A stretch of 64,000 bases of DNA, from sequence record MK799832.1. The stretch is one strand, 5' to 3'. Shown piece by piece: positions 9,807 to 61,500 of this stretch (position 1 is its first letter; each line of letters opens with the position of its first letter). Below the pieces are notes generated by a model. The model searched no databases, was not told where the DNA came from, and worked only from the letters and a program-made list of their open reading frames with translations. Made by a program: the position numbers and the translations under genes.

Positions 9807-10465
9807 AAACATTAAGAGATTTCCTATCAGAAGCATACGATCCTGACCTCAAAGGTGCACAGATTCGTAGAACTGGTGAAGGTGGTAGGAAACAACCTAA
9901 GAGAGAAACTGAAACAAGAAGAAAGGCTGGTCAATCACCACGAATGAAGGCAGTTGGTGGTGGTAAGATGGCACCTGTTGGTGAATATAAGACTCGTAAA
10001 GACGTAGGTACAACTAAAGCACGTTCTGAAAGAGAACAACAACCTGAAAAGGAACGTGGTTCTGCAGAAGTCAAACAAACTTATGCGGATAAGGCAAAGG
10101 CAGAAAGAAAGGCAGCAGCAAGAGCACGTATTGCTGCAAGAAAGGCAGGTACTGAAGTTAAGAAAGACACAACATCATCGAAAGATGTTGAAAAGAAAGC
10201 AACACAGATGTTGAAGACTAAGAAGGCAGAACCTAAGAAGACTGAACCAGCAAAAGAACGTCGTAGTTGGAAGACTACAGACGGTGGTGGTATGACAAGA
10301 AAAGAAAGAGATGCTGCTCGTAATAAAGAGACTGGTAAGAGTAGAAAAGATGTAAAGTCACAACTTCGTGCTGACTTTGAGAAGAAACACGGTAGAAAAC
10401 CAAACAAGAAAGAGGCAATTCAACTGACTGCAAAGGCACATGCTGCAGCTAAGGCTCTAAAATGA
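9803..10465 (+). CDS. Lys/Arg-rich hypothetical protein
   Basis: MKTLRDFLSEAYD start; highly charged, low complexity. Confidence 0.65.
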   Translation: MKTLRDFLSEAYDPDLKGAQIRRTGEGGRKQPKRETETRRKAGQSPRMKAVGGGKMAPVGEYKTRKDVGTTKARSEREQQPEKERGSAEVKQTYADKAKAERKAAARARIAARKAGTEVKKDTTSSKDVEKKATQMLKTKKAEPKKTEPAKERRSWKTTDGGGMTRKERDAARNKETGKSRKDVKSQLRADFEKKHGRKPNKKEAIQLTAKAHAAAKALK

Positions 10466-10620
10466 CACAGAAGATGATGCGACTGTTTAATACAGTCACA
10501 GAAGCAAGATCTTATCTGAGAACTAACCATGGTATGACAATTGCGAGAGCAAAACAATATGTTGATAACCATACTACAATGAAAAATGGTAACAAAGTCT
10601 GGGTAGTTCTCCCCTGATAT

Positions 10621-10703
10621 TGGGCGGTCAACATGGCAGGGGTGTTAGGTTGACGTAAGACCCTTTTTATGGTATAAATATAATTACCCCTGTCAATAGA
10701 AGA
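10621..10703 (+). promoter_or_regulatory. Structured leader with T4-type late promoter
   Basis: GGG-CG-GTCAAC...GTTGAC-GTAAGA-CCC hairpin; TATAAATA 10673-10680; loop strand 10635-10644 complementary to 10685-10694. Confidence 0.6.
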
Positions 10704-11195
10704 ATGGACCCGTTTGAAAGTCTAAAGAACTTTGTCTGTGAAGATGACACAGACCACACACCATATGCAACTCCTGAAGGTATCGGACCAAGACGTGGTA
10801 TTCCATGGTCTGATGAAGAACGTGAGTTGCAAATAACCACTAATCCTTACTTTGACCGTGACAATCAGGTTGAAGCAGGAAAGAAAGGTGGTAAAATTAC
10901 AAGAGAAAATAACTTAGGTATCTTCAATCCTGAGTATGATAGAACTCCTGCGGCAAAACTTGGTGGGAGTAAGGGTTCTCGTGCCCAGATAGACAATAAT
11001 ATTGGTATCTGGGGGATGACACCTGAACAACAATCAGAGAGGTCAAAAAGAGGAGCCAAAACAACAACATCTCAACGATGGAAATGTTTAGTCACTGGCC
11101 ACATATCATCCCCTGGTGGTCTCTCTAACCATCAGAAGGGGTTAGGTATAGATTACAAGGACAAATCACTTCGCGTCAGAATTACTCACCTCTAA
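10704..11195 (+). CDS. Homing-endonuclease-derived protein lacking a recognisable nuclease motif
   Basis: GKKGG/KLGG repeats and QRWKCLVTGHISSPGGL tail as in phage HNH/GIY-YIG C-termini; no HNH or GIY-YIG motif visible. Confidence 0.45.
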   Translation: MDPFESLKNFVCEDDTDHTPYATPEGIGPRRGIPWSDEERELQITTNPYFDRDNQVEAGKKGGKITRENNLGIFNPEYDRTPAAKLGGSKGSRAQIDNNIGIWGMTPEQQSERSKRGAKTTTSQRWKCLVTGHISSPGGLSNHQKGLGIDYKDKSLRVRITHL

Positions 11196-11227
11196 AGGTC
11201 ACCTATAGTACGATACCACACTAAATT

Positions 11228-12152: not shown

Positions 12153-13331
12153 ATGATCAAACTCCGCCCTCATCAACAGGACGCTGTTTACGCTCTTCGT
12201 AATAACTCTATCGGTCAAATCATTGTTCCTACTGGTGGCGGCAAGACTCTTATCGCTATCATGGACGCAGTGAGACGATTTGAGATAAAAGTTCCTCGCA
12301 CTATTGTTGTTGTCGCTCCTCGTATTCTGTTGGCAGAACAACTGTCATCAGAGTATCTGGAACATATCACCAATGCAAATGTTCTCCATGTTCATAGTGG
12401 AGAGACAAAACATTTCAGTACCACGAAGTCTGACCGTATCAAATTATTTGTTGATATGTGTCAAACTATGCGTGAACACGTTATTATCTTCACCACATAT
12501 CATTCTCTTCATCGTGTACAAGAGTCTGGTATTGCTGTAGATACGATTTACTTTGACGAGGCACATAACTCTGTTCAACGTAACTTCTACGGTCCCACTG
12601 AGTATTTCAGTAAGCATGCAGATCGTTGTTACTACTTCACTGCAACTCGTAAAACCAGTGTGACTGTGAAGAAACCAGGCATGAACTGGACTGAGACTTA
12701 TGGTCAAGTGATTGCACGTGTGTCTGCACCTGATCTGGTTCAGAATGGTTACATTCTTCCACCTAAGGTCAAGGTGATTGAGATGGATAAGATTGACAAA
12801 AAGTCTCTCACTCCTCATCTTGAGGGTAACAATGTCCTCGCATCTATTGACCAGATTGACATCAAGAAGATTCTGGTTTGTGTTAAGACCACACGACAGT
12901 TACAGAACCTGTTCATGACTGATTTCGCTGATCAGTTGACAGAACGTGGTTACTCTTATCTGTATATCACCGCCAAGACTGGTGCTGTTATCGATGGTCA
13001 GAAAGTATCTCGTGAAGAGTTTTTCAATACTCTGAATGCATGGGGTCGTGACAAGTCAAAGAAATTTGTTGTCCTTCACCGTTCTATTCTGTCTGAAGGC
13101 ATCAACGTGTCTGAACTTGAGGCGGTTATCTTCCTTCGTAACATGGACAGTATTGAGCTTCTTCAAACTGTCGGACGTGTCATTAGGGTTGGTTCTTCTA
13201 CTAAAACCTACGGTATGCTCTGCGTCCCTGTCTACAATCAGGTAGGACTTTCCACTCAAAAGTCTCTCCAGCGTTGTGTTGATATTGTGTTTGAGAAGGG
13301 AGAAATGCTTGACAGTGTAACTCGTAAATAA
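12153..13331 (+). CDS. SF2 DExH helicase
   Basis: PTGGGKT Walker A, FDEAH, FTAT, LSEGIN, QTVGRVIR. Confidence 0.9.
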   Translation: MIKLRPHQQDAVYALRNNSIGQIIVPTGGGKTLIAIMDAVRRFEIKVPRTIVVVAPRILLAEQLSSEYLEHITNANVLHVHSGETKHFSTTKSDRIKLFVDMCQTMREHVIIFTTYHSLHRVQESGIAVDTIYFDEAHNSVQRNFYGPTEYFSKHADRCYYFTATRKTSVTVKKPGMNWTETYGQVIARVSAPDLVQNGYILPPKVKVIEMDKIDKKSLTPHLEGNNVLASIDQIDIKKILVCVKTTRQLQNLFMTDFADQLTERGYSYLYITAKTGAVIDGQKVSREEFFNTLNAWGRDKSKKFVVLHRSILSEGINVSELEAVIFLRNMDSIELLQTVGRVIRVGSSTKTYGMLCVPVYNQVGLSTQKSLQRCVDIVFEKGEMLDSVTRK

Positions 13332-13425
13332 TAATGTGGGCAGTCAGTGTGTCTTGGCGGGTAAATTGACGTAAGTCCCACATTATGATAAAATTCTAAA
13401 TAGTAATGTCATCGCCAAGACACAC
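13331..13425 (+). promoter_or_regulatory. Structured leader with late promoter sequestering the HNH start region
   Basis: Perfect 10-bp stem 13331-13340/13377-13386; perfect 13-bp match 13347-13359/13413-13425; TAAATA 13397-13402. Confidence 0.7.
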
Positions 13426-13908
13426 ATGAGAAATTATCAACTCCCTTCACAGGGTAGGTTACAGGAACTTTTCGCCTACCAAGATGGTGAACTTATCTAC
13501 AAAAAATGTAGGGGAAGACAACCTGCAGGTTCTATTGCAGGGACTAAACATCACACTGGATATTATCAAATATCTGTGGATAAGAAGATATATTTAAAGC
13601 ACAGATTGGTGTATCAGTATCATTATGGTGACTTAGAGCAGGAACAACAAATAGACCATATTGATAGAAACAAAAGTAATAACAGAATAGAAAACTTACG
13701 AGCAGTTGACCAAACACAGAATAATTACAATACTAAAGTAAGAAACAATAATGAATTAGGTGTCAGAGGTGTATCGACCGCACATAGTGGTAGATATTAC
13801 TCTCGTATTGCACATGAAGGTAAAACTGAATATTTGGGGATATATGATACTATTGAAGAAGCCCACCAAGTATATCTAAATGCATTACACAAACTCACAC
13901 ATCCTTGA
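13426..13908 (+). mobile_element. HNH homing endonuclease with AP2-like C-terminus
   Basis: HRLVY...IDHIDRNKSNNRIENLR; GVRGVS...YLGIYDTIEEA. Confidence 0.85.
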
Positions 13909-14060
13909 TTGTAAACCAGGAACATTACCTATCATTGTGGGTGATGGTTATCTGGCTGCAATTCCACTGGTTGGTTCAACAACTAAACTTGTGGTTGTTC
14001 ACAATGGTGTGGTGGTTAAAGTATGTCGTAACAGACAATCTGCGATGACATTGATTAGAA
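13880..14060 (+). pseudogene. Small hypothetical gene cut by junction
   Basis: Reads ...VCRNRQSAMTLIRK, then sequence switches to nrdB in another frame. Confidence 0.5.
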
Positions 14061-14477
14061 AATCAACACCTTGCCATCACTCAGAACATCCTGAACAAGT
14101 GGAGATCAGGTGATGATCCTGAGATGCAACAGATCATGAAGGAAGAAGAAGAGTGGTTGTATGCCATGTTTGACAAGGCTGTCAACGAAGAGAAGAGATG
14201 GGCTGACTATCTCTTCAGAGATGGAAGTATGATTGGTTTGAATGACACACTTCTGAAGAAGTATGTTGAGTGGGTTGCCAATCGCAGAATGAAAGCAATT
14301 GGTCTTAAGCCCGTGTACGATGTCGCTGCAAAGAACAATCCTCTCCCTTGGACACAACATTGGATCTCTTCTAAGGGTCTTCAAGTCGCACCGCAGGAGA
14401 CGGAGGTAGAGAGCTACGTGGTTGGTGGTATCAAACAAGATGTCAAGAAAGACACATTCTCAGGATTCAAGCTTTGA
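14058..14477 (+). pseudogene. nrdB: Ribonucleotide reductase class Ia beta subunit, 3' fragment only
   Basis: ENQHLAITQNILNKW...EKRWADYLF...APQETEVESY; no 5' two-thirds and no nrdA upstream. Confidence 0.9.
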
Positions 14478-16100: not shown

Positions 16101-16174
16101 GACTCAATAGCTCAGCTGGATAGAGCAACTGCCTTCTAAGCAGTCGGTCGTAGGTTCGAATCCTACTTGAGTCG
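16101..16174 (+). tRNA. tRNA-Arg(TCT)
   Basis: Cloverleaf, anticodon loop CT-TCT-AA, GGTTCGAATCC T-arm. Confidence 0.95.
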
Positions 16175-16175
16175 T

Positions 16176-16385
16176 TGGAGATTGATCATCTCCATAGGGT
16201 ATGACAGAAAAGTTGGTGTGGTCAAGCACCCAACATTGTATAGTAAGGAAGGCTGTGGTGGCCACCATGTGACCTGGAGACAGGAGGCATGAGAACCCAT
16301 ACCAAGGGTCCTGAAAGTTCAGAGGTATCATTAACATTAGTGAGACCCCTCTGTTGAAGGTATAATGTAATCCTTCTACCCACCC
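16176..16385 (+). ncRNA. Structured ncRNA between tRNAs, probably manA RNA motif
   Basis: Several hairpins (GGAGAT/ATCTCC, GTTGG/CCAAC, CAGAGG/CCTCTG, GAAGG/CCTTC) and GGTATG/CATACC pairing; manA RNAs are known beside cyanophage tRNAs; not confirmed by covariance search. Confidence 0.5.
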
Positions 16386-16387
16386 AT

Positions 16388-16462
16388 GCCTCCGTAGCTC
16401 AGTGGTAGAGCAGGGCTTTTGTAAAGCTCAGGTCGCAAGTTCAAATCTTGTCAGAGGCTCCA
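16388..16462 (+). tRNA. tRNA-Thr(TGT)
   Basis: Cloverleaf, TT-TGT-AA loop, encoded CCA. Confidence 0.95.
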
Positions 16463-16535
16463 GGGGAATTAGCTCAGTTGGTAGAGCACCTGCTTTGCAA
16501 GCAGGCTGTCAGGAGTTCGAGTCTCCTATTCTCCA
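16463..16535 (+). tRNA. tRNA-Ala(TGC)
   Basis: Cloverleaf, TT-TGC-AA loop. Confidence 0.95.
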
Positions 16536-16551
16536 TCCTCCTAGGAGGTTT

Positions 16552-16752
16552 ATGAGTAAAGAGTATACGTTCGGGGGTCTTGACAGATCTTCAATCAATA
16601 TGTTAAGATTGATCAGTGAACTTGAGGGTTCTTTTCAACTCCTTAAATACATGGGGTACGAAGAGGACATGAATACCATTTCAGAAATGAAACAACGGTA
16701 TTACAAACTTTACTTCAAGACCGCCAAAGAGGAGAAATCCAATGACCTATAG
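16552..16752 (+). CDS. Hypothetical protein within tRNA cluster
   Basis: AGGAGG RBS before ATG 16552; stop overlaps the tRNA-Asn 5' end. Confidence 0.65.
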   Translation: MSKEYTFGGLDRSSINMLRLISELEGSFQLLKYMGYEEDMNTISEMKQRYYKLYFKTAKEEKSNDL

Positions 16753-16815
16753 CTCAGTTGGTAGAGCAGCTGACTGTTAATCAGCCTGTCCCAGGTTCGA
16801 GCCCTGGTGGGTCAG
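16743..16815 (+). tRNA. tRNA-Asn(GTT)
   Basis: Cloverleaf, CT-GTT-AA loop. Confidence 0.95.
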
Positions 16816-16818
16816 TTA

Positions 16819-16900
16819 GGGTGGTTGTCCGAGTGGTTAAAGGAGATGGACTGTAAATCCATTGGCTCTGCCTACCTTGGTTCAAATCCAAGACCACCCA
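16819..16900 (+). tRNA. tRNA-Tyr(GTA)
   Basis: Long variable arm, CT-GTA-AA loop. Confidence 0.93.
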
Positions 16901-16906
16901 CCTTGA

Positions 16907-16978
16907 GGGAGTTTAGCGCAGCGGTAGCGCAGTTGCTTTACACGCAATTGGTCACAAGTTCGAATCTTGTAACTCCCA
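16907..16978 (+). tRNA. tRNA-Val(TAC)
   Basis: Cloverleaf, TT-TAC-AC loop. Confidence 0.93.
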
Positions 16979-17000
16979 TATCGAATTACAAACATGACCC

Positions 17001-17249
17001 ATGATTACTGTAAGATGCAAACAGTGTAACAAAGAAATCCGAAGTGACCATCACATACATTGTTGTGGTTGTCCCAATATGATGACGGTAATTGAAGACA
17101 AGGTTACAGCAGTTGACTTGTCTAAAGTAGTGATGGTAGAATCTAACAAGGAACCAATTTCAAAAGGTGTCCTTAGTAACTCCGATCTCTCCTATCAGGA
17201 AGAGAGGAGAAAAAGAAAGGTGAGGAGACTTGATTTTGAAGTTCGTTGA
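17001..17249 (+). CDS. Zinc-ribbon hypothetical protein
   Basis: CKQC...CCGCPN. Confidence 0.6.
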   Translation: MITVRCKQCNKEIRSDHHIHCCGCPNMMTVIEDKVTAVDLSKVVMVESNKEPISKGVLSNSDLSYQEERRKRKVRRLDFEVR

Positions 17250-17787
17250 AGTCAAAGATAACATCTATCGTATCAAGAGTATACTTGATACAAAGGATTT
17301 CTTTTCACTGAACGACGAACTTAATTCAAAATACAATACCTGGAGATTTACCAAAAACGATAGTTATGAGGAAGACCATCCCAACATGGGATGTTTGATG
17401 AAACCATTATCAAAATTCAATACTATTGGTGATAACCTTACACTGATTAAGTATGGTACTCTACTCAAGTATCAGTGTCAGAAAATTATCAAACAAAATC
17501 TGACATTAAATAGAGTTAATACCAACATTCAGTTTTTTGGTCAAGAGTCTACCTTTCATACTGATGGCTCATTTGGAAGTTGGACTCTTTTAATTTTTGC
17601 GAATCCTTCTTGGAATAGTGTATGGGGAGGTGAGTTTGTTGTAATGACTGAAGACAAAGAATATCTTTATCAATCATTCATTCCTAACGACGCAGTGTTA
17701 TTCCCTGCACATTTGGAACACATGGGGTTTGCTCCTAATGTTCTTTGTAAACATCCAAGAATGACAATCGCATATACTTATACTTGA
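17230..17787 (+). CDS. 2OG-Fe(II) oxygenase
   Basis: FHTDG...WGGEF...PNDAVLFPAHLEH...RMTIA. Confidence 0.8.
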   Translation: MILKFVEVKDNIYRIKSILDTKDFFSLNDELNSKYNTWRFTKNDSYEEDHPNMGCLMKPLSKFNTIGDNLTLIKYGTLLKYQCQKIIKQNLTLNRVNTNIQFFGQESTFHTDGSFGSWTLLIFANPSWNSVWGGEFVVMTEDKEYLYQSFIPNDAVLFPAHLEHMGFAPNVLCKHPRMTIAYTYT

Positions 17788-17824
17788 CAACCACACTAGA
17801 TGTGGTATGATAGATAAGACACAC

Positions 17825-17913
17825 GGAAGAATGGCAGAGTGGTTGATTGCACCAGTCTTGAAAACTGGAGAGGTTAGTAGCCTCCGCGAGTTCGAATCTC
17901 GCTTCTTCCTCCA
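17825..17913 (+). tRNA. tRNA-Ser(TGA)
   Basis: Long variable arm, CT-TGA-AA loop, encoded CCA. Confidence 0.93.
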
Positions 17914-17987
17914 CGGAATGTAGCTCAGCTTGGTAGAGCACTGCTTTTGGGAAGCAGGGGTCGCACGTTCGAATCGTGTCATTCCGA
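17914..17987 (+). tRNA. tRNA-Pro(TGG)
   Basis: Cloverleaf, TT-TGG-GA loop. Confidence 0.93.
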
Positions 17988-18043
17988 CTGAATAAATACT
18001 AGAAGGATTATACCATCTAGATGGAACCCATAAGAATCTGATT

Positions 18044-19546
18044 ATGATAACCCCATCCCAATTCTTTAATGATACCAAGGAGATCATTGAAGTTGTAGAA
18101 GAATCTATTGAAGAAAAGCAGGCACTGGAAGAGGAAATTTCTCATTCAGTGTCTTTAATTGATGGTGCGTTCAAAAGTATTCAAGAAAATATTCTCTCTT
18201 CTAACAAGAAAGAACTGTCTGTATATAAGGGACAGGTATTAGAAGTTTATAATTTTTGCAACGACATCAAAGAGAATTTACTTCCTAGGTATAAGAAGGA
18301 AGTTATTCAATCTGATCTAAGAACAGATCAAAAAATTAAAGATCTCAAACAGGAGTTCTATGAAACTCTTGAAGAAAGAATTGAAGAGACCAAGGAAACC
18401 ATCAAGGTATACTTCAGAGAGGAAGTAAAGGATCTCAACAAACTCAGGGCAAGTGTTGTTCTGGTTGAAAGATATATTAAGGAAAACTCCTCAGCAATTG
18501 TCAGTCTGAGAGAGGAAGTATTTGCTCAACTTAGAGAGTCTAATAGTGATTCTGAAATTAATCAGATTGTCATTCAGGATAAGTTAGATGAGATAAGCAA
18601 AGAGTATGAGACGTTAAGTGAGGGACTTCTGAATGAACCACCCTCCACTAGTAATAGTGACCCACTCACACCATTAGATCAGAACTTTGTAACTCTGGAT
18701 CAGTTACAACAACACTACAAGGTATTTGTAAACAGAGTTCAACAACAACTGGCAACAGTTGGTGGTGGTGGTGAAGTCAGACTTGAGTTTCTGGATGACA
18801 TTGATAGATCCACTGCTCTGATTGATGGTAGAGTTCTTGCATACCAAGCATCTACTGGCAAGTTTATTGGAACTACCACTACCTCTGGTAGTGGACTTCC
18901 TTCTGGATCAGTAGGACAACTTCTACAACATGATGGTTCATCCTTTGTTGGTATTGCATCCACAGGATTTTCAGACTATGTAATTAGTGAAGGTCAAGGT
19001 TACTACGCATACACGACTGACTACTACACAGTTGGTGTTGCAAATACCACACAAGAAATTATTGAGGGAGAGTGGACACTTATTCAACCACAAGTAGCAT
19101 CTGGTGGTTTGTATAATTATCAACCAGGTCCCATGCTTAGATGCAATGCTGGTGATCCTTGGATTGGTATGGGTGCTACAATTGGTACAGGTCAGACAGA
19201 GTTCTCATTGGCAGGAACAAAACCTGGCACTTCATGTATTGTAAGATCAGTTTTTAGATTTGAACCTGATACTGATGAAACTGATTTGGATATGAGACTC
19301 CACTTCACTACTAATACAGCAACTCAAGGAACAGGACTCACTAACTTCAACATTGAGAAACAGGCACTGGTTATGACTGTTGGTGCTGCTGTCACATACA
19401 CCAGTGAAACATTAATCTCTTTCTTTGTTGGTGAGACATTGTATGGTGATACAAAGGCAGATGCAGGTTCATTCTGTGTTGAGGTAAATGGAACAACTGA
19501 TGGAACCCTAGAGATTCTGGGTTTAACTGTTATGGTAGACGTATAA
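18044..19546 (+). CDS. Virion structural protein (coiled-coil N-terminus, GGGGEVRL motif)
   Basis: ATAAATA late promoter at 17992; acidic coiled-coil then T/G-rich beta region. Confidence 0.55.
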   Translation: MITPSQFFNDTKEIIEVVEESIEEKQALEEEISHSVSLIDGAFKSIQENILSSNKKELSVYKGQVLEVYNFCNDIKENLLPRYKKEVIQSDLRTDQKIKDLKQEFYETLEERIEETKETIKVYFREEVKDLNKLRASVVLVERYIKENSSAIVSLREEVFAQLRESNSDSEINQIVIQDKLDEISKEYETLSEGLLNEPPSTSNSDPLTPLDQNFVTLDQLQQHYKVFVNRVQQQLATVGGGGEVRLEFLDDIDRSTALIDGRVLAYQASTGKFIGTTTTSGSGLPSGSVGQLLQHDGSSFVGIASTGFSDYVISEGQGYYAYTTDYYTVGVANTTQEIIEGEWTLIQPQVASGGLYNYQPGPMLRCNAGDPWIGMGATIGTGQTEFSLAGTKPGTSCIVRSVFRFEPDTDETDLDMRLHFTTNTATQGTGLTNFNIEKQALVMTVGAAVTYTSETLISFFVGETLYGDTKADAGSFCVEVNGTTDGTLEILGLTVMVDV

Positions 19547-19558
19547 GGAGGAAAACCA

Positions 19559-22114
19559 ATGGGAGTTAAAATTTACGCAGATACAAGTACTGGATTCCTC
19601 CACTTTGATGGTAGTAGAATCTCACCCAAACCACTGAATGGTGTTATTACAGCTTCTGCATCTAATAAAGCATTTAGAATTAGAATCACAAGAAGTGACC
19701 TTCTTCAAGCAAATGGTAACCCTAGGGTTATGTTCAAGCACCTGAAGATGAATAGGGTTGAAAGACAAGATGGTACAAATCTTCGTCTTGATCTTGGATA
19801 TAGCAGACAACAAATTATTGATTATATCAATACTGAAGCACAGAAGGTTGTTGAGACTGGTATTGAAGGTGTTGCAGTATGTATTGATGGTACTGTTGTA
19901 TCTTATGCTGCAACTACAATTGACTTTACTGGTAGTGCAGTTCAATCTCTTGAGGTAACTGGTGGTATTGCTACGATTTCTATTGCACAAACCACTGCTG
20001 TTGGTGGTGGTAGTTCATATGCAGATAGTGATGTAGATACTCATCTCAATGTTGGTCTTGCAAACACTGGTGATATTCTTACTTGGGGTGGTTCTGACTA
20101 TGAGTGGAGTGCTCCTTCCACTATTGGAGCAGGTAATCCTGTAGTTAATGGTTCTATCACTGGTGTAGGTAACAGTACTCTACGTCTCGTACTACAAGAT
20201 TCTAATGTTATTGATATTGATTTAAGTACTCTGAACACCACTGGTTCTGATGATGACATCAACACTAGGATTACCAAGGCAGTATCTTTTGCAAGAACTG
20301 AAACCACTTACTTGAGATATTCAGTAGGTAGTGCATCCAATAATATGTGGGATGCTGCATTCAGGACACCTGGTAGCACTCCATTGGGTATGGGATCAGC
20401 AGCAGATACTCATGTTTCTAATGATGGTAATGCACAACCCTTCGCACAAACTCTTATCTTCAGAAACGCAGGTATCAATACTGATAGAGACAGTGTTCTA
20501 GTTGGAGTTACTGATGGTGATGAAGCGGATATCATGGTTCCTGGTATAATTCATCATTATATTGGTATTAGTTCTACCAAGAAACTTGTTCATCACTGGG
20601 GTGAACCACACGTCCTAGGTATTGGCACTACTCAGGCTAACAGAGCAGAGTTGATGGATGTAAGTGATGATAAATTCTATGGTATCTTTATGGACTTTGA
20701 TGGACAGAGATTTGGTACTGGTGTTTCCACATCTCAACTGAATAGTCAGTTTAGATATAAAGTGGTTGATCTTTCAAGTGGAGATGTTACTGACTTAACA
20801 CCAAACTGGACACACTATGGTAAGAGTCAGGATGGTAATGGTGATTCGCGAGTGTATTCAAGATTAATGTATGGTGCTCTTGCTGGTACAAATAATAATA
20901 ATGTATCATCAGCATCAAATGTACATTTAAGATTTGAGGGTGATATTGCACAGGCAACTAGTATAACCTATCAACAGGGAGCAGTTTTGCTTGATGATAC
21001 ACAGGTAAGTTTGATGGTTCGTAACCCCGAGAAGTATCTCAGAGACTATAAGGTTGGTACTTCATCTAGAAGACCTTACTTTGATACTACTCAACTCTTC
21101 AAAGTGAGTTTTGCAAACTACCATTTCCAAGCAGCACAAGTTTGGCTAATGGGTGATGGTGATTATGATTCACTTGGTTCTTCTAGTGAACAGGGTGTCA
21201 GAAATTTTGTAAGACCAGACGCATATATGAGACTGAATTGGCCCAGTTATCCATCTTATACTGGATTCACAACTGTGAGTGTTACCGCTGGTCCTTCCTT
21301 TACGAATACAAAATCAACTAATTTTGAGAACCTGGATCATGCTACCAGGAATCGTCAAAGTGGTGAGTTCACTAACTTGATTAAGACATCTGGTCAGACG
21401 GCATCTGCATACACTCTGAGTTTCTGGTTCAGACCAGGTAACAACTCTCATGAGGATCAAAACATCTTTAACGCTTTTAGTCAATACAATACATTTGAGG
21501 GTACAAGTATCATCCAAGTGATGTACAATGGTAATACAGCATCAACTAGAAACATTAGATTCAAGGTTCAGGATCAGTCTGGTGGACTTGATGCAGATAA
21601 TTACAGACTTGACTTAGCTACACCTGTTGGTGATGTGACTCACACCAATGGTAGTAATGGTTTCCATCATATTGCTATCACCTGTGATGGTTCTGCTAAT
21701 GCATATACATCAGCAAGTCTTGGCATCAAGATCTATATCAATGGTGTACTCCAAACACTGACTGATAATAGTAATGGTGGTGGTATTGAAGATGTTCCAT
21801 CTGGTGGTGAGACTTTCTCTATTGCTCCAAATAAAATCGCACTTGGAAGACAACCAACCAATGCAAGATATATGAGAGATTCAAAGGTTGATGAACTCTC
21901 ATTCTTCAATACAGAACTCAATGCAACTGAAGTCGCTTGTCTGTATAATGGTGGTACTCCATCCAATCTTGCTAACTTCATTCCAGGACCAGCACACTGG
22001 TACAGAATGGGTGATGGTGATTCAGCACCAACTCTTGCAGATAGTATCGGTAACGCAGACCTGTCTATGACGAATATGTCTGACGCCAACTTTGTGACTA
22101 TAGTTCCTTCTTGA
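19559..22114 (+). CDS. Large structural protein with C-terminal LamG/ConA-like domain
   Basis: TLSFWFR...FHHIAIT...KIYINGV...VDELSFFNTELNA..V..LYNGG. Confidence 0.65.
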   Translation: MGVKIYADTSTGFLHFDGSRISPKPLNGVITASASNKAFRIRITRSDLLQANGNPRVMFKHLKMNRVERQDGTNLRLDLGYSRQQIIDYINTEAQKVVETGIEGVAVCIDGTVVSYAATTIDFTGSAVQSLEVTGGIATISIAQTTAVGGGSSYADSDVDTHLNVGLANTGDILTWGGSDYEWSAPSTIGAGNPVVNGSITGVGNSTLRLVLQDSNVIDIDLSTLNTTGSDDDINTRITKAVSFARTETTYLRYSVGSASNNMWDAAFRTPGSTPLGMGSAADTHVSNDGNAQPFAQTLIFRNAGINTDRDSVLVGVTDGDEADIMVPGIIHHYIGISSTKKLVHHWGEPHVLGIGTTQANRAELMDVSDDKFYGIFMDFDGQRFGTGVSTSQLNSQFRYKVVDLSSGDVTDLTPNWTHYGKSQDGNGDSRVYSRLMYGALAGTNNNNVSSASNVHLRFEGDIAQATSITYQQGAVLLDDTQVSLMVRNPEKYLRDYKVGTSSRRPYFDTTQLFKVSFANYHFQAAQVWLMGDGDYDSLGSSSEQGVRNFVRPDAYMRLNWPSYPSYTGFTTVSVTAGPSFTNTKSTNFENLDHATRNRQSGEFTNLIKTSGQTASAYTLSFWFRPGNNSHEDQNIFNAFSQYNTFEGTSIIQVMYNGNTASTRNIRFKVQDQSGGLDADNYRLDLATPVGDVTHTNGSNGFHHIAITCDGSANAYTSASLGIKIYINGVLQTLTDNSNGGGIEDVPSGGETFSIAPNKIALGRQPTNARYMRDSKVDELSFFNTELNATEVACLYNGGTPSNLANFIPGPAHWYRMGDGDSAPTLADSIGNADLSMTNMSDANFVTIVPS

Positions 22115-22161
22115 CTTATCTGGTGATCTGAAGTAGTATTATCTCACCTACATAAGTCAGT

Positions 22162-22335
22162 ATGGAAGTCTTCACGGTGCAAGAATTTCAAGAGAATTGG
22201 GACGAGCTTATAGACAGGGTAGAGAACGGAGAGATATTCGGAATAGTAAATGAAAATGGATCTGCAGCAGTGATAATGCCAACTGACGATCCATTGTACA
22301 AAATGTACTCAGAAAATAATAACGAAGCTCCCTAG
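22162..22335 (+). CDS. Small Phd/YefM-like hypothetical protein
   Basis: MEVFTVQEFQENWDELIDRVENGE..IV..NG..AVIMP, translated by hand. Confidence 0.5.
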   Translation: MEVFTVQEFQENWDELIDRVENGEIFGIVNENGSAAVIMPTDDPLYKMYSENNNEAP

Positions 22336-22406
22336 GGACTGTCGCCTAACGGTTAAGGCCCACTGCTTATAACGGTGTGACCTGGGTTCAATTCCCAGCA
22401 GTCCTA
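22335..22406 (+). tRNA. tRNA-Ile(TAT)
   Basis: Cloverleaf, CT-TAT-AA loop. Confidence 0.88.
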
Positions 22407-22410
22407 CCTT

Positions 22411-22483
22411 GGGGGATTAGCAATCTGGTGAATGCACCGAACTCATAATTCGGCTAAGGTGGGTTCGATCCCCTCATCCCCCA
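22411..22483 (+). tRNA. tRNA with CAT anticodon (Met or Ile2)
   Basis: Cloverleaf, CT-CAT-AA loop. Confidence 0.88.
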
Positions 22484-23621: not shown

Positions 23622-23806
23622 CAGCACTGGTCGGTGAAGGGAGGCCCCTTCAATCCCGCGTTTCTTAGTTCGTAAAACTAAGTGGTGGAGTCACTGGACC
23701 CAACTGAGTTTACTAATTCTCCAAAGATTAGTTGGTGCGGATGGAGGAAACTCCCGCCTGAGATTTAGTTATTACTCAGTGATAAAAATAACTTGGCGAG
23801 CCTGAG
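23622..23806 (+). ncRNA. wcaG-like structured RNA (three hairpin + TGGYG units)
   Basis: TGGTG 23683, TGGTG 23733 and TGGCG 23794, each after an A/T-rich hairpin; UGGYG copies are my recollection of the cyanophage wcaG motif. Confidence 0.55.
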
Positions 23807-23810
23807 TACC

Positions 23811-31139: not shown

Positions 31140-31183
31140 CATGGACAGGTCAGGGTTTCCTGACTTACCTAAACTCCCCTTAA

Positions 31184-31285
31184 ACCAAGACCTCTAGGGA
31201 GTATAAACACGTCTTTCATATCCTCGTTAAGGGTACGAGGAAATAGTAACTCCACCATTTCCCTGATGGTCTTACTTTTTTGTTC
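31184..31285 (+). ncRNA. PhotoRC-II-like psbA leader RNA
   Basis: AAGACC/GGTCTT outer pairing, CCTCGT/ACGAGG hairpin, directly 5' of phage psbA. Confidence 0.65.
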
Positions 31286-35420: not shown

Positions 35421-35894
35421 ATGGCAACTAAATCTTTCACTGTGAAAACTAAATTACCTCCCAACCCATTTGTTCATGAGATTCTTGAGTTGGTATCTAA
35501 ACAAAGAACGAAAGCAAAAAAGATTGAAATCCTACAAGAACATCGATGTGATGCACTCACATCTATTCTGATTTGGAACTTTGATGACAGTGTTCTGTCA
35601 ATGCTCCCTGAGGGTGAAGTACCTTTTAATAAGAATGAGGCACCTCTTGGCACCGATCACACCTCACTTCGTAAGGAGTGTAGGAATCTGTATCACTTTG
35701 TAAAAGGTGGTAATGACGGTCTCTCTAAGACACGTAGAGAGTCTATGTTTATTCAAATGCTCGAAGGTCTTCATCCTGAGGAAGCATCAATCCTGTGTCT
35801 TGTAAAAGACAAACGTCTTGGTGCTCAGTACAAGATCACTGATGATGTGGTTCGTAAAGCCTATCCCGATATTGAGTGGGGTGGTCGATCTTGA
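35421..35894 (+). CDS. Conserved T4-like phage hypothetical protein
   Basis: LPEGEVPF...RESMFIQMLEGLHPEEA..L..VKDK. Confidence 0.75.
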   Translation: MATKSFTVKTKLPPNPFVHEILELVSKQRTKAKKIEILQEHRCDALTSILIWNFDDSVLSMLPEGEVPFNKNEAPLGTDHTSLRKECRNLYHFVKGGNDGLSKTRRESMFIQMLEGLHPEEASILCLVKDKRLGAQYKITDDVVRKAYPDIEWGGRS

Positions 35895-36702: not shown

Positions 36703-36870
36703 ATGAACACACTGAACATGATCAAGAAGCAGATCAACAAAGCATCTGCACTTCACGACGCACAGATTTCTCACACTGCATATCGTGGTGTTGAGTATGA
36801 TGTACACTGTGAAGAGAAAAATGAAACCCACGGAACATTTTGCTACCGTGGACGCACTTACGTCAAGTGA
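36703..36870 (+). CDS. DUF4278-like small protein
   Basis: AGGAG RBS; TAYRGVEY...FCYRGRTYVK, translated by hand. Confidence 0.7.
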   Translation: MNTLNMIKKQINKASALHDAQISHTAYRGVEYDVHCEEKNETHGTFCYRGRTYVK

Positions 36871-40014: not shown

Positions 40015-40622
40015 TACCTAAAGTGACACCCTTCGACACTTACAAGAGTTATCTTGGATTGAAAAATCACTTTACAAAAGAAAAATATGATTACCATCGT
40101 TATGGTGGTAAGTCTCGTGCATCATTAGAGTCCTTTTACAAACGTAAAGACAGGTTCTTTTTTGAAAAATTGAGTCGGCAGAAAGATGATAGTGAAGTTA
40201 TTGAATTCTTTGTCAGTAATTTTGTGTCTTGTGATGATCCTCAGTCTCTGTGGATTGGTGAGATCGTCAGGAACGGTGAACAGAACTACACCGATTGGAA
40301 AAAACGTCTTCAGTCTCTATCTTATACGTTCAAATCAGAAGTAGAGAATGTTTTTTCTGGTAAAAACTTTGATGAGATGTTCAAGATTGAGGGAACTCGT
40401 CACCCTCAACTCATCAAAGAACACCTTGGAAAGAACCTTTCCCTTGAGTCTTTAGTGATCTTAAATAAGATCCTAGGATTCAAAAAACAATTCGATAGTA
40501 AACTGAATGACCCTGTGTGGAAGTTCTTATCGATGAGAATTGACAAGTATGATTCCTTTATACATATTGATGTATTCAAATTTAGATCTATCCTCAAGGA
40601 GGTTATAATCAATGGCACTTGA
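40011..40622 (+). CDS. Helicase loader gp59
   Basis: YLGLKNHFT...YDYHRYGGKSRAS..SFYKRKDRFFFEKL. Confidence 0.9.
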   Translation: MIPKVTPFDTYKSYLGLKNHFTKEKYDYHRYGGKSRASLESFYKRKDRFFFEKLSRQKDDSEVIEFFVSNFVSCDDPQSLWIGEIVRNGEQNYTDWKKRLQSLSYTFKSEVENVFSGKNFDEMFKIEGTRHPQLIKEHLGKNLSLESLVILNKILGFKKQFDSKLNDPVWKFLSMRIDKYDSFIHIDVFKFRSILKEVIINGT

Positions 40623-58540: not shown

Positions 58541-61500
58541 TGATCCGTAACCATTGGATGCGATACCGCTTCAAACTGCAGTCACCCGGTGAATACATCC
58601 CCAACGATAATGACGACCAGACCACCTTCAACGTAGGAGCCGTAAGTGTGGAGGAAAACAGCAGTAAGGAGCCGATCCCATATGTGTTGCCCCCAGGTGT
58701 AGAACGTGAGCAGTTTGTGGGTAACAATGCCGGAAATACCTTCCTGCAGAATGAGCAATCCATGTTGTTGGAAGTTTGTGGTCTCCAAGATGGCGACAGT
58801 CGCGCTGTATTCAAAACCCTCAACTTCGACTTCCGTCAGTACGAGCGGATGCAGCTCTTCCTTCACGCTGAAGCCTTTACCGGCCAGCAGATTGCTACCG
58901 AAATCAGAGATGGAGAATTGTGGGCGTTCGTTCGATTAGGAGATGACTTCACAGAAAACTATTATGAGTACGCTTTACCACTCAAAATCACCAACCCGAA
59001 TGATGTTGCTGGTGGTGAATTAGAGCGTAGAGAAGCGATCTGGCCGCAAGACAACCTCATTGATGTATTGCTTGATACTTTGAAGGAAGTGAAGGTACAG
59101 CGTAACGATCGAGGCTTGAGTCGTACGGTGCCTTACGAAATTACCCTTGCCAACGGCCACAAGATCACCATCATCGGTAACCCGAACCTGGGTAGCGTGA
59201 AAATCTCAATGATCGGTCTGCGCAATCCAAAAGACCCGGATGTGATCGGGGAAGACCTATGTGCAGAAGTGTGGGTCAATGAATTCCGTTTATACGGCCT
59301 CAACAACCAGGGCGGAGGTGCCGGGGTGGTACGAGCCGATCTGCAATTAGCCGATTTGGGTTCTGTATCATTGGCAGGTAGCTTCCACACTATTGGTTTT
59401 GGTCAGCTAGAGCAAAAAGTAAATGAACGTTTCCGTGACAATTTCATGCAGTACGATGCCTCTACCAACCTGGAACTAGGTCGCTTGATGCCAAAGGACT
59501 GGGGTGTGAGCATTCCGATGTATGCCGGTATTTCCAATGCTTACAGTCGTCCGGAATTCGATCCATACGACTTCGATATTCGTACGAAGGAGAATGTGAT
59601 CGGCATGACCGGTGACGAAAGACGGGAGTATTATCGGCAGGTGCAGGACTTCACTTCTATCAAGAGTTTGAACTTCACCAACGTCAGGAAAAATAAAACG
59701 GGAGGCGGTAGTGCCAAACCGTGGGATATCTCCAATTTCAACCTCACCTATGCCTTCAGCGAGACCTTCCGATCGAGTCCGATCATTGAATACGATATCA
59801 TTCGGAGGAATAAGGGCGGATTGGCCTACCAATACAATACCCGTACAAAATACATTGAGCCTTTCAAAAAACTCTTCGGCAGAAGCAAGTGGTTGCAGTT
59901 GGTCAAAGACTTCAATTTTAACCCTATACCGAATCGATTCTCCTTCCGAACGGAGATGAATCGACAGTATGGCGAGACCGTCTTACGCGATTTGAATGGC
60001 GATGCCTTGCTGGATACGACCTATAATAAGTTCTTTACGTGGGATCGATTCTACGATATGCGTTGGGATATCACCAAATCATTGAAACTGGACTTCAATG
60101 CTGCCAATCTCGCACGAATCGATGAGCCCGATGGAAGGATCGATACTGATGCCGATAAGGACTCTGTATGGACTAACATCCGCAACCTGGGTAGAAATAC
60201 CAATTACCGGCACTCCATTACACTGAACTATAACCTGCCAACCAGCAAATTCCCGCTGACTGACTGGATCAATGCAAGAGCAGCCTATTCTGCCGATTAT
60301 GAGTGGGTAGCCGCCTCCCTGGTAGTGGATTCTTTGGGTAATACGCTTCGCAATTCTCGAAATATTCGACTGAATGCTGATGGTAACTTATCGCGGCTCT
60401 ACAACAAGGTAGATATCCTCAAACGCGCCAATCAGCGAAGTCGTCCGCAGCGAAATTCATCTCCAAGGAGAAGAGGAGGGGATAATGCAAAAGAAGAAGA
60501 AACAGAAGAAAAGGACAATAAGAAAGATAAAGGTGGTGGTGACTTGCACCCTGCCCTGAAGACGGCCTTACAGCTTGTAACCGGACTGAAGCGTGCCTCT
60601 GTAAACTATACGCGAACAGAAGGGACAGTGCTCCCTGGCTATGAACCTGAGACAGAATTCTTTGGTCTTCGCAACTGGACAGCACCGGGCTGGCAATTTA
60701 TCACCGGGTATCAACCTGACTCCTTCGATCTCAACCAATATGCTGCCAACGGCTGGATCGTGCAGGCGCAGACCTTACCCTTCCAGCATACTCAGACCCT
60801 ACAGGAGAACTTTGATATGCGGGTGACCATTGAACCACTGCCCGATATGCGCATCGACCTGAATTGGAAGAGTACTTACCAGGAAAACTTTGCTGAGTTC
60901 TTCCGTTGGGATCCCGTGACCAGCCGATATGTGCACCAAAATCCTATGGACCAGGGTAGCTACACTATCACTTACAATGGTCTCAATACCCTGTTTGACC
61001 GGGTCGACACCGCAGGCTTCTCAGAGACCTACCTGGACTTCGAAGAAAAGCGAAAAGAGGTTTCCAGAATACTGGGTGATCGAAACCCTTACTCCAACGG
61101 TACCTTCCTGGAAGAGAATGTATTTGATACGCTCTCCTATCCAGAATATTCGGATGGATATGGCCCTTACTCTGTAGATGTGTTAGTGCCTGCATTCTTG
61201 TCTTCGTATACGGGAATCCCGATCGAGGAAATTGGATTTAACTTATTTAATACCCGGCCGAAGCCCAACTGGCGCTTTACCTACAATGGTTTGAGTAGGA
61301 TCGGGCCTTTGAGTGAGATATTCCAAAACTTCAACATCACTCACGCCTACAATTCACAGCTAACTATCAATAGCTTCCAGACTGACTTCAATTACGAAGA
61401 CTCATTGAACACCGGATGGCCTTCTGCCCGGGATAGTTTGGCGGGCAACTTCTTCCCGGTATATACCATCCCGCAGATCATGCTATCCGAACAATTTGCT

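Follow-up and report, generated by a model that had tools for sequence, protein, structure and literature searches.

We identified a family of cyanophage RNA leaders in which a conserved scaffold of two helices, separated by a near-invariant RTAAG internal loop, presents in its apical loop a strand complementary to the start region of the following gene. This arrangement is the new element of the design, and the scaffold appears to have been undescribed so far; the leader as a whole is best regarded as a known mechanism in a new architecture and not as a new kind of system. On balance, we think it probable that these leaders follow the logic of I-TevI and mobE, by which read-through mRNA would be masked by its own leader whilst transcripts from internal promoters would be translatable. 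The two copies from which the family was traced lie in a 64-kb stretch of DNA (hereafter the window) that is identical to the final 64 kb of the Kyanoviridae member Synechococcus phage S-B05 (MK799832.1), window coordinates being record coordinates minus 144857. Both lie on the + strand amid a cluster of small genes. Over ∼85 bases (10622–10703 and 13338–13425) they share a common plan, in which GGGC-R-stem-loop-stem-GTAAG-N-CCC is followed by a late promoter of T4 type and by a segment before the ATG that can pair with the leader's own loop (Table 1). Copy 1 stands between a 51-aa ORF and a 163-aa ORF, and copy 2 between a helicase gene and an HNH_3 endonuclease gene.

Table 1. Features of the two leaders and their flanking genes (window coordinates)
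Feature	Position	Strand	Remarks
51-aa ORF upstream of copy 1	10462–10617	+	
Cassette 1 (leader and 163-aa ORF)	10618–11179	+	562 bp; in S-B05, not in RN05-S
Copy 1 scaffold	10622–10663	+	Isolated fold −14.3 kcal/mol
Copy 1 P1	10622–10625 with 10659 and 10661–10663	+	GGG(C) with (G) and CCC
Copy 1 unpaired R	10626	+	G
Copy 1 P2	10627–10632 with 10649–10654	+	GTCAAC with GTTGAC
Copy 1 apical loop	10633–10648	+	
Copy 1 anti-start strand (P3 5′ strand)	10634–10644	+	TGGCAGGGGTG, in apical loop; 11 bp with 10685–10695, 2 G-U
Copy 1 promoter region	10650–10680	+	Sigma-70-type extended −10 overlapping late motif: TTGACG 10650–10655, 17-nt spacer, TG 10670–10671, TATAAA 10673–10678
Copy 1 internal loop	10655–10660	+	GTAAG(A)
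Copy 1 T4-type late motif	10673–10680	+	TATAAATA
Copy 1 start-region strand (P3 3′ strand)	10685–10695	+	TACCCCTGTCA; −19 to −9 before ATG
Copy 1 predicted transcript start	∼10686	+	
163-aa ORF behind copy 1	10704–11195	+	ATG at 10704; no nuclease domain detected
Helicase gene	12153–13331	+	ResIII/DEAD/Helicase_C; 3′ end is a recurrent insertion site for such cassettes
Cassette 2 (leader and HNH_3 gene)	13326–13891	+	566 bp; not in RN05-S or S-B43
Copy 2 scaffold	13331–13386	+	Isolated fold −18.9 kcal/mol, z −2.8
Copy 2 P1	13331–13340 with 13377–13386	+	10 bp
Copy 2 C-A	13341–13342	+	
Copy 2 P2	13343–13347 with 13366–13370	+	GTCAG/TTGAC
Copy 2 anti-start strand (P3 5′ strand)	13347–13360	+	14 bp with 13412–13425, perfect
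Copy 2 apical loop	13348–13365	+	
Copy 2 promoters	13366–13402	+	Sigma-70-type (TTGACG 13366–13371, 17-nt spacer with TG, TAAAAT 13389–13394), then late motif
Copy 2 internal loop	13371–13376	+	GTAAGT
Copy 2 late motif	13395–13402	+	TCTAAATA
Copy 2 predicted late start	∼13408	+	
Copy 2 start-region strand (P3 3′ strand)	13412–13425	+	Adjoins ATG at 13426
HNH_3 homing endonuclease gene	13426–13908	+	160 aa; PF13392, E 4e-17

The initial annotation of this DNA had described the scaffold and late promoter of copy 1, together with a loop strand complementary to the segment before the ATG, and all three were confirmed. For copy 2 it had placed the same scaffold at 13337, with a different loop strand that again matched its own start region. 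The scaffold is indeed present and the match is perfect, but three small details required correction: the conserved scaffold pattern of copy 2 begins at 13338 and not at 13337, its inner stem has 5 bp including one G-U pair, and its late motif is TCTAAATA and not TATAAATA.

Elsewhere in the window, Rfam matches comprised a manA RNA (16176–16386), a wcaG RNA (23704–23807), a PhotoRC-II RNA (31161–31254) and ten tRNA genes, the matches spanning 16101–22483, 23704–23807 and 31161–31254. Metatranscriptome contigs that could be placed on the window were three in number, short, and located within 10244–10573, in the genes upstream of copy 1; none of them covered a leader. Directly behind the HNH gene the record annotates a 102-bp repeat (window 13956–14057, record 158813–158914), a second copy of which lies at record 40399–40500; the genes found 3′ of the HNH gene in RB11-B and RN05-S are located in S-B05 at record ∼40.3 to 37 kb on the opposite strand, which reflects either a rearrangement or a join made at the repeat during assembly. 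S-B05 is also represented by a separate record of 40.5 kb.

The arrangement is not due to chance: the pattern GGGC-N12-42-TAAG-N-CCC occurs twice in the window against 0.14 occurrences expected. A covariance model of the scaffold recovered only the two copies there (E-values 2e-15 and 3e-10) and returned no strong match in the other 145 kb of the S-B05 genome. A third TTGACGTAAG in the window (36857–36866, minus strand) lacks the scaffold and was discarded as a chance match. Rfam 15 gave no match at either leader at gathering thresholds and nothing but noise at E-values up to 10, so that the family is not one already described there. Outside the window, the exact pattern derived from the two copies was found 33 times on 32 viral contigs, and a variant with a GCAAC/GTTGC inner stem, first met in a sample of genes chosen without regard to their leaders (described below), added 118 further stretches. 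After removal of GC-rich chance matches and orphans, the curated family contains at least 95 distinct members. These derive from viral metagenome contigs and from four cultured cyanophages: S-B05, RB11-B, Sf-CH5 and the freshwater phage S-SRM01. Amongst cultured relatives, blastn with the two leaders retrieved S-B05 and RB11-B only, and variant leaders retrieved Sf-CH5 and S-SRM01 in addition; none of the cultured carriers found in this way has a published start-site map. Three pattern matches in bacterial genomes, in GC-rich Actinobacteria and one alphaproteobacterial metagenome-assembled genome, were left out of later analyses, a similar number being expected by chance on a rough estimate.

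Related hairpins were also observed outside the curated set. One locus (L158 2957–2997, minus strand) holds an orphan scaffold with an intact masking loop, in which the start strand and endonuclease gene are gone and an unrelated gene is next; this looks like a relic left after gene loss. At S-B05 record 35689–35737 (minus strand, L262) there is a scaffold-like hairpin, GGGCA-TTGAGTGT...ACACTCA-TGTAAG-GCCC, with the GTAAG loop present and with no late promoter or start-site pairing. A similar GTAAG hairpin with a short loop stands ahead of an unrelated 256-aa gene (L139/L176). In Sf-CH5, a GIY-YIG-type gene behind a family leader (L265 1580–2002; PV340852.1 156271–156693) is annotated as 'translation initiation factor 2', which is probably a misannotation.

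Both helices of the scaffold covary. Across 50 diverse scaffolds and 12 pairs of P1 and P2, 94.5 % of cells were paired, compared with 77 % in column shuffles and 31–47 % with slid partners. Double changes were seen at seven pairs, and RNAalifold returned the same two helices de novo. Amongst the pairs not fixed by our search patterns are P2 positions 5–6 and P1 positions 5–6, where all four Watson–Crick types occur. Compensatory changes are present in all three helices, P1, P2 and P3. G-U pairs outnumber A-C mismatches by 40 to 4 in the family, with G-C to G-U changes at the base of P2, which argues that selection acts on the sense-strand RNA and not on the DNA or the antisense strand.

Between the two helices lies an asymmetric internal loop, with R opposite RUAAG(N), and the apical loop measures 13–21 nt. 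The conservation of GTAAG, also claimed initially, survived a search in which the 3′-side loop was left free in both sequence and length: true members had GTAAG (36) or ATAAG (3) and no others, and a separate count gave 71 against 5. To our knowledge, the RUAAG loop resembles no known internal-loop motif, and it differs in strand lengths from the 11-nt tetraloop receptor (CCUAAG/UAUGG), the UAA/GAN motif and the K-turn.

Pairing between the loop and the start region (P3) is also backed by covariation. In a 27-sequence subset aligned in register, 94.6 % of cells over 13 pairs were paired and 8 of these pairs had compensatory changes. Across the family we counted 37 distinct strand pairs, and the helix between a leader's own loop and own start region had a mean score of 11.3, as opposed to 6.0 with partners from other classes or with a shuffled loop. 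What had looked like covariation in two copies is therefore borne out. In copy 1, and in the entire class of leaders with a G-rich loop, P3 stops 7–10 nt short of the AUG, and would consequently cover a standby region and not the AUG or a Shine–Dalgarno element.

The leader had been called pseudoknot-like, and as topology this is correct: P3 crosses P1 and P2, and each helix is backed by covariation. The coexistence of full stems, however, does not follow. The 5′ linker between P2 and P3 (L1) is mostly 0–1 nt and the 3′ linker (L2) 0–8 nt, for a P3 of 8–15 bp, and L2 length showed no scaling with P3 length across members. Because a linker of 3–5 nt should be too short for 12–15 bp, full P2 and full P3 look, on geometric grounds, incompatible in many members, and a static compact pseudoknot is improbable as the linker fails to lengthen with P3. 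In nested minimum-energy folds of the long form, P3 was present and the scaffold melted in 76 of 89 leaders; likewise, both window copies folded into P1, internal loop and P2 when the scaffold was taken alone, and into the long-range helix when the downstream leader was included. Mean energies were −17 kcal/mol for the scaffold and −20 kcal/mol for the P3 duplex, compared with −1.6 kcal/mol for the short form that would arise from the internal promoters. P3 and the scaffold are thus probably in conformational exchange, most likely through pairing nucleated in the loop followed by opening of P2, with P1 possibly kept; partial coexistence of P2 and P3, or of P1 and P3, is possible.

The sequence TAAATA lies between the P3 strands in all 95 members, so that the late promoter, judged by its motif, has the position between the two pairing strands that was originally proposed for it. 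The 8-mer is TATAAATA in 46 members, AATAAATA in 17, TCTAAATA in 15, GATAAATA in 11 and something else in 6; the reported cyanophage late consensus is NATAAATA (PMC2984593). When the late start was predicted by the T4 spacing rule, it lay within −3 to +7 nt of the position at which the P3 3′ strand begins in 94/95. In S-B05 itself, TAAATA is found 25–45 nt before the ATG of late structural genes, namely those for tail sheath, tail tube, portal and scaffold, and was not found upstream of the replication genes checked.

Most leaders additionally contain a TGnTATAAT-like element 17 nt past a hexamer in the P2 3′ arm. A TATAAT-like hexamer with at most one mismatch is present 16–18 nt downstream of that hexamer in 84/95 members, and is wholly absent in any −10-like form from some members, such as L142 and L174. 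Both window copies match at 10 of 12 sigma-70 positions and possess the TG, with TTGACG as the −35 hexamer, whereas ∼60 % of members have GTTGCG or CTTGCG at the −35 position, a variation that arises because P2 covaries. The ordinary late promoters of S-B05 have no TATGN context before TAAATA. As such, the late motif claimed for these genes is present, but expression restricted to late infection is not implied, since a sigma-70-type extended −10 is there as well. For the middle-mode genes of RB49 and S-PM2, a pairing of an early with a late promoter has been proposed (PMC2984593). As regards termination, the scaffold was not called in a standard terminator scan, and a moderate U-tract follows P1 (median of 5 T in 8).

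In order to gauge how general masking is, we used a leader-unbiased sample of 72 distinct regions upstream of GIY-YIG genes, picked by protein similarity alone. A start-masking helix spanning the proximal late promoter was found in 56 of these, seven with the scaffold and 49 of a simpler type (type B). Masking is thus the rule for GIY-YIG genes, and the scaffold is a minority architecture. Type B leaders (L047–L124, ∼125 nt upstream of GIY-YIG genes, near locus position 475–603) consist, in order, of TAAATA, ∼5 nt, the masking strand, a small GC hairpin with a T-run, TATAAATA, the start strand and the ATG. They serve the same gene family by the same masking logic, with their hairpin and T-run directly before TATAAATA. 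Unlike the scaffold leaders, they have neither P1/P2 nor RUAAG, and their masking strand is linear and lies upstream of a small canonical terminator hairpin, usually with a second TAAATA before it. This upstream TAAATA is at most 16 nt from the masking strand in 32 of the 49, and could give rise to a short late RNA that contains the masking strand and terminator. Upstream of the S-B05 endosialidase gene (L263 ∼10,880–10,943; S-B05 record ∼60,880–60,943), a canonical terminator hairpin and T-run directly precede TAAATA; this pair resembles a type B leader but has no masking helix.

Mobility was evident from RN05-S, a near-identical phage from which both cassettes are precisely missing, each leader and gene as one unit. 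At both cassettes, homology to RN05-S stops directly behind the stop codon of the upstream gene (TGA 10615–10617 for cassette 1); it resumes at AATTACTCACC (11180) for cassette 1 and at ∼13892 for cassette 2. Leader and endonuclease-type gene are therefore present or absent together, in agreement with the suggestion that the module travels with mobile genes. RB11-B has a near-identical leader 1, in which identity stops after ATGGAC and a different 150-aa ORF follows. Immediately 3′ of orthologues (43–100 % identity) of the window's helicase gene we found 43 of the 95 cassettes, and eight at the copy-1 site; the helicase site is occupied by HNH_3, GIY-YIG and two other families. Over the whole family, the downstream genes are GIY-YIG/NUMOD3 (most), HNH_3, HNH, a 173–212-aa family of unknown fold, and small ORFs. 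At cassette 2, the 3′ end of the HNH gene overlaps a new start (MHYTNSHILDC...) of the next ORF (window 13880–14113), which at the empty site of RN05-S starts with MFTNSHILDC right at the helicase stop codon; hence, cassette 2 gives its neighbour a replacement start.

The gene behind copy 1 is not recognizable as an endonuclease. Searches of the 163-aa ORF against Pfam, PHROGs and PDB sequences returned nothing, and a protein atlas gave weak leads towards NUMOD3; residues 28–162 are 80 % identical to the ORF behind another leader of the same type. The RB11-B ORF shares 62 % identity with the C-terminal portion of full-length GIY-YIG genes that are found at this site in other contigs. Judged by their sequences, the two ORFs look like remodelled derivatives without a catalytic domain. 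At the right border of cassette 1, overlapping the stop codon of the 163-aa ORF, is the conserved intergenic motif ATTACTCACCTnnAAAGGTCnnnTATAGTAC (window 11181–11211, single copy in the window), just before a DUF6267 gene. It also occurs at L003 2322–2352 and at S-B05 record ∼35,590–35,620 (minus strand), and looks like a phage-specific promoter.

These observations are best explained if each copy is the 5′ part of a ∼565-bp mobile cassette in which a regulatory leader is joined to a free-standing gene of homing-endonuclease type. On read-through mRNA from the upstream gene, the leader would first fold into the P1/R-RUAAG(N)/P2 hairpin, whose apical loop would show a strand complementary to the 8–15 nt just before the AUG of the cassette gene. 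P3 would then nucleate from the loop, displacing P2 at least partly, and is proposed to bury the ribosome landing site, so that read-through transcripts would go untranslated. Transcripts from either of the two promoters between the P3 strands, the T4-type late promoter (NNTAAATA) and, in most members, the sigma-70-type TGnTATAAT, would begin at, or a few bases before, the P3 3′ strand. Such short transcripts would not have the masking strand, and with an essentially unstructured leader would be translatable. The GC-rich P1 and U-rich tract probably attenuate incoming transcription as well, in which case the cassette would be shielded from the surroundings of its insertion site whilst supplying transcription of its own to the downstream gene. 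The regulatory reading offered initially was thus largely right, in that the masking pairing covaries and the late promoter is between the strands, but the pseudoknot holds only as topology and exclusively late expression is not implied. As the scaffold is the first to form in the course of transcription and is nearly as stable as P3, silencing may be kinetically incomplete, and an active sigma-70-type promoter would mean that expression is not late-restricted, unlike in the I-TevI paradigm.

Masking leaves the near-invariant RTAAG unexplained, and this loop, kept whilst both flanking helices covary, speaks for a reading that we nonetheless hold to be unlikely, in which the scaffold is a binding or processing module and its RUAAG is read by a factor of phage or host origin, for instance RNase E, RNase III or a translational repressor. 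Such a factor would either set the balance between a scaffold-folded, start-free state and a P3-paired, start-masked state, or cut the read-through mRNA, an elaboration to which we give a small chance only. The similar energies of the two conformers are in keeping with this, and the GTAAG hairpins without a masking loop (L139/L176 and S-B05 record 35689–35737) suggest a function of P1/RUAAG in its own right. Protein binding at GTAAG is, however, pure conjecture, and since the proteins encoded downstream are not related to one another, what binds in all cases cannot be the product of the cassette itself. In its fullest form, P1/RUAAG/P2 would be an autonomous, factor-recognized two-state switch repeatedly captured by different selfish endonuclease genes; though improbable on present evidence, this would, if true, constitute a new cis-regulatory RNA class specific to cyanophage mobile genes.

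Two further readings would demote or relocate the masking. At the DNA level, the nearest concept is that of PeSLs (promoter-early stem-loops) of T4-like phages, in which a GGG...CCC-type stem-loop is combined with a sigma-70 promoter close to consensus; these elements mark the sites where near-identical phages differ by the gain, loss or exchange of accessory genes (PMC2839356, PMC4122927). They have been proposed to serve as a terminator and recombination patch, and their terminator and promoter activities have been measured (PMC2839356, PMC4122927). That our element is a mobile promoter/terminator cassette of this kind, with masking secondary, seems to us quite unlikely; the same low expectation applies to its particulars, in which the 3′ arm acts as −35, the hairpin as terminator and the shared sequence as a homology patch for endonuclease-gene swaps. 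The arrangement TTGACG-N17-TGnTATAAA or TAAAAT in the two copies, the TATAAT-like hexamer in most of the family, the TATGN context missing from the same phage's late genes, and the association of one leader with different genes at one site (RB11-B versus S-B05; the helicase site) would all fit. With GTTGCG or CTTGCG so frequent at −35, though, it is the pairing that is conserved and not the −35 sequence; the G-U pairs point to selection at the RNA level, the strong P3 covariation is inexplicable in DNA terms, and some members, e.g. L142 and L174, have no −10-like hexamer to begin with. In PeSLs, moreover, the stem-loop stands beside the promoter and not over its −35, and no strand complementary to a downstream start is found; they flank ORFans on both sides, as in PeSL mini-circles, and are not reported in cyanophages, whereas the covariance model finds one copy of our element per cassette, on the 5′ side only. 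Very unlikely, finally, is that the scaffold would be freed as a small RNA, through termination or processing downstream of P1, and that its loop would target, in trans, the endonuclease mRNAs transcribed from the internal promoters. Antisense RNAs that act in trans typically display their antisense strand in a loop, a T-rich tract follows P1, and in about a quarter of members a TAAATA ends 7–8 nt ahead of the scaffold, so that a late transcript would begin at the base of P1. In the scaffold leaders this upstream TAAATA mostly results, however, from the preceding gene's stop codon together with AT-rich sequence, TAG or TGA being able to stand in its place, and a small RNA from such a promoter was rejected on these grounds; copy 1 has no upstream TAAATA, and most members have no promoter for such an RNA.

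Masking of the start on read-through mRNA, the explanation we prefer, is established for I-TevI, I-TevII, I-TevIII, segB and Aeh1 mobE (PMC2988022). The T-even and Aeh1 leaders share with ours an upstream strand that pairs with the initiation region, a late promoter (in ours putative, from its motif) between the strands, and a setting of homing endonuclease genes inside longer transcription units (PMC2988022). As with I-TevI and mobE, a complementary upstream strand is found in both copies (11 and 14 bp, respectively), and an endonuclease gene is found behind copy 2 (HNH_3) and in the family at large (GIY-YIG/NUMOD3, HNH, HNH_3). Unlike in the T-even leaders, the masking strand here is in the apical loop of a separate conserved scaffold and its pairing crosses that scaffold; there is a RUAAG internal loop and usually a host-type promoter too; one leader serves several unrelated endonuclease families; and in the G-rich loop class the masked segment lies upstream of the AUG and not over the Shine–Dalgarno element or AUG.

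Closer to our phages, Dassa et al. (2009; PMC2677866) reported hairpins before free-standing endonuclease genes at cyanophage-like 'fractured gene' loci in ocean metagenomes, present in 15 of 16 leaders, ten of them with TATAAATA, as well as two conserved motifs that are mutually complementary, and read these hairpins in the same masking way. One hairpin described there was kept after loss of the endonuclease gene, comparable to the orphan scaffold noted above, and the two motifs likely overlap the scaffold leader. Pairing of a loop to the start across a scaffold, the covariation of this pairing, the RUAAG loop and the extent of the family are not described in the text of that paper. The novelty supposed at the outset is thus only partial, for although no Rfam family exists, endonuclease hairpins of cyanophage type, late promoters and two motifs were already reported (PMC2677866).

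Amongst the small mobile elements of T4-like phages, homing endonuclease genes are the principal kind, and the control that renders them harmless while permitting their expression is known from no more than a few cases in coliphages and an Aeromonas phage group. The leaders described here, at least 95 from marine and freshwater cyanophages, show the masking principle built differently and common to unrelated endonuclease families. As it stands, this set could be put forward as a new RNA family, and it is a marker with which mobile cassettes can be found and delimited in cyanophage genomes and metagenomes, misannotated ones included. Its RUAAG loop offers a lead to a putative RNA-binding or RNA-processing activity in cyanophage infection, and the leader itself represents a testable, portable control module that would insulate a selfish gene from its insertion site.
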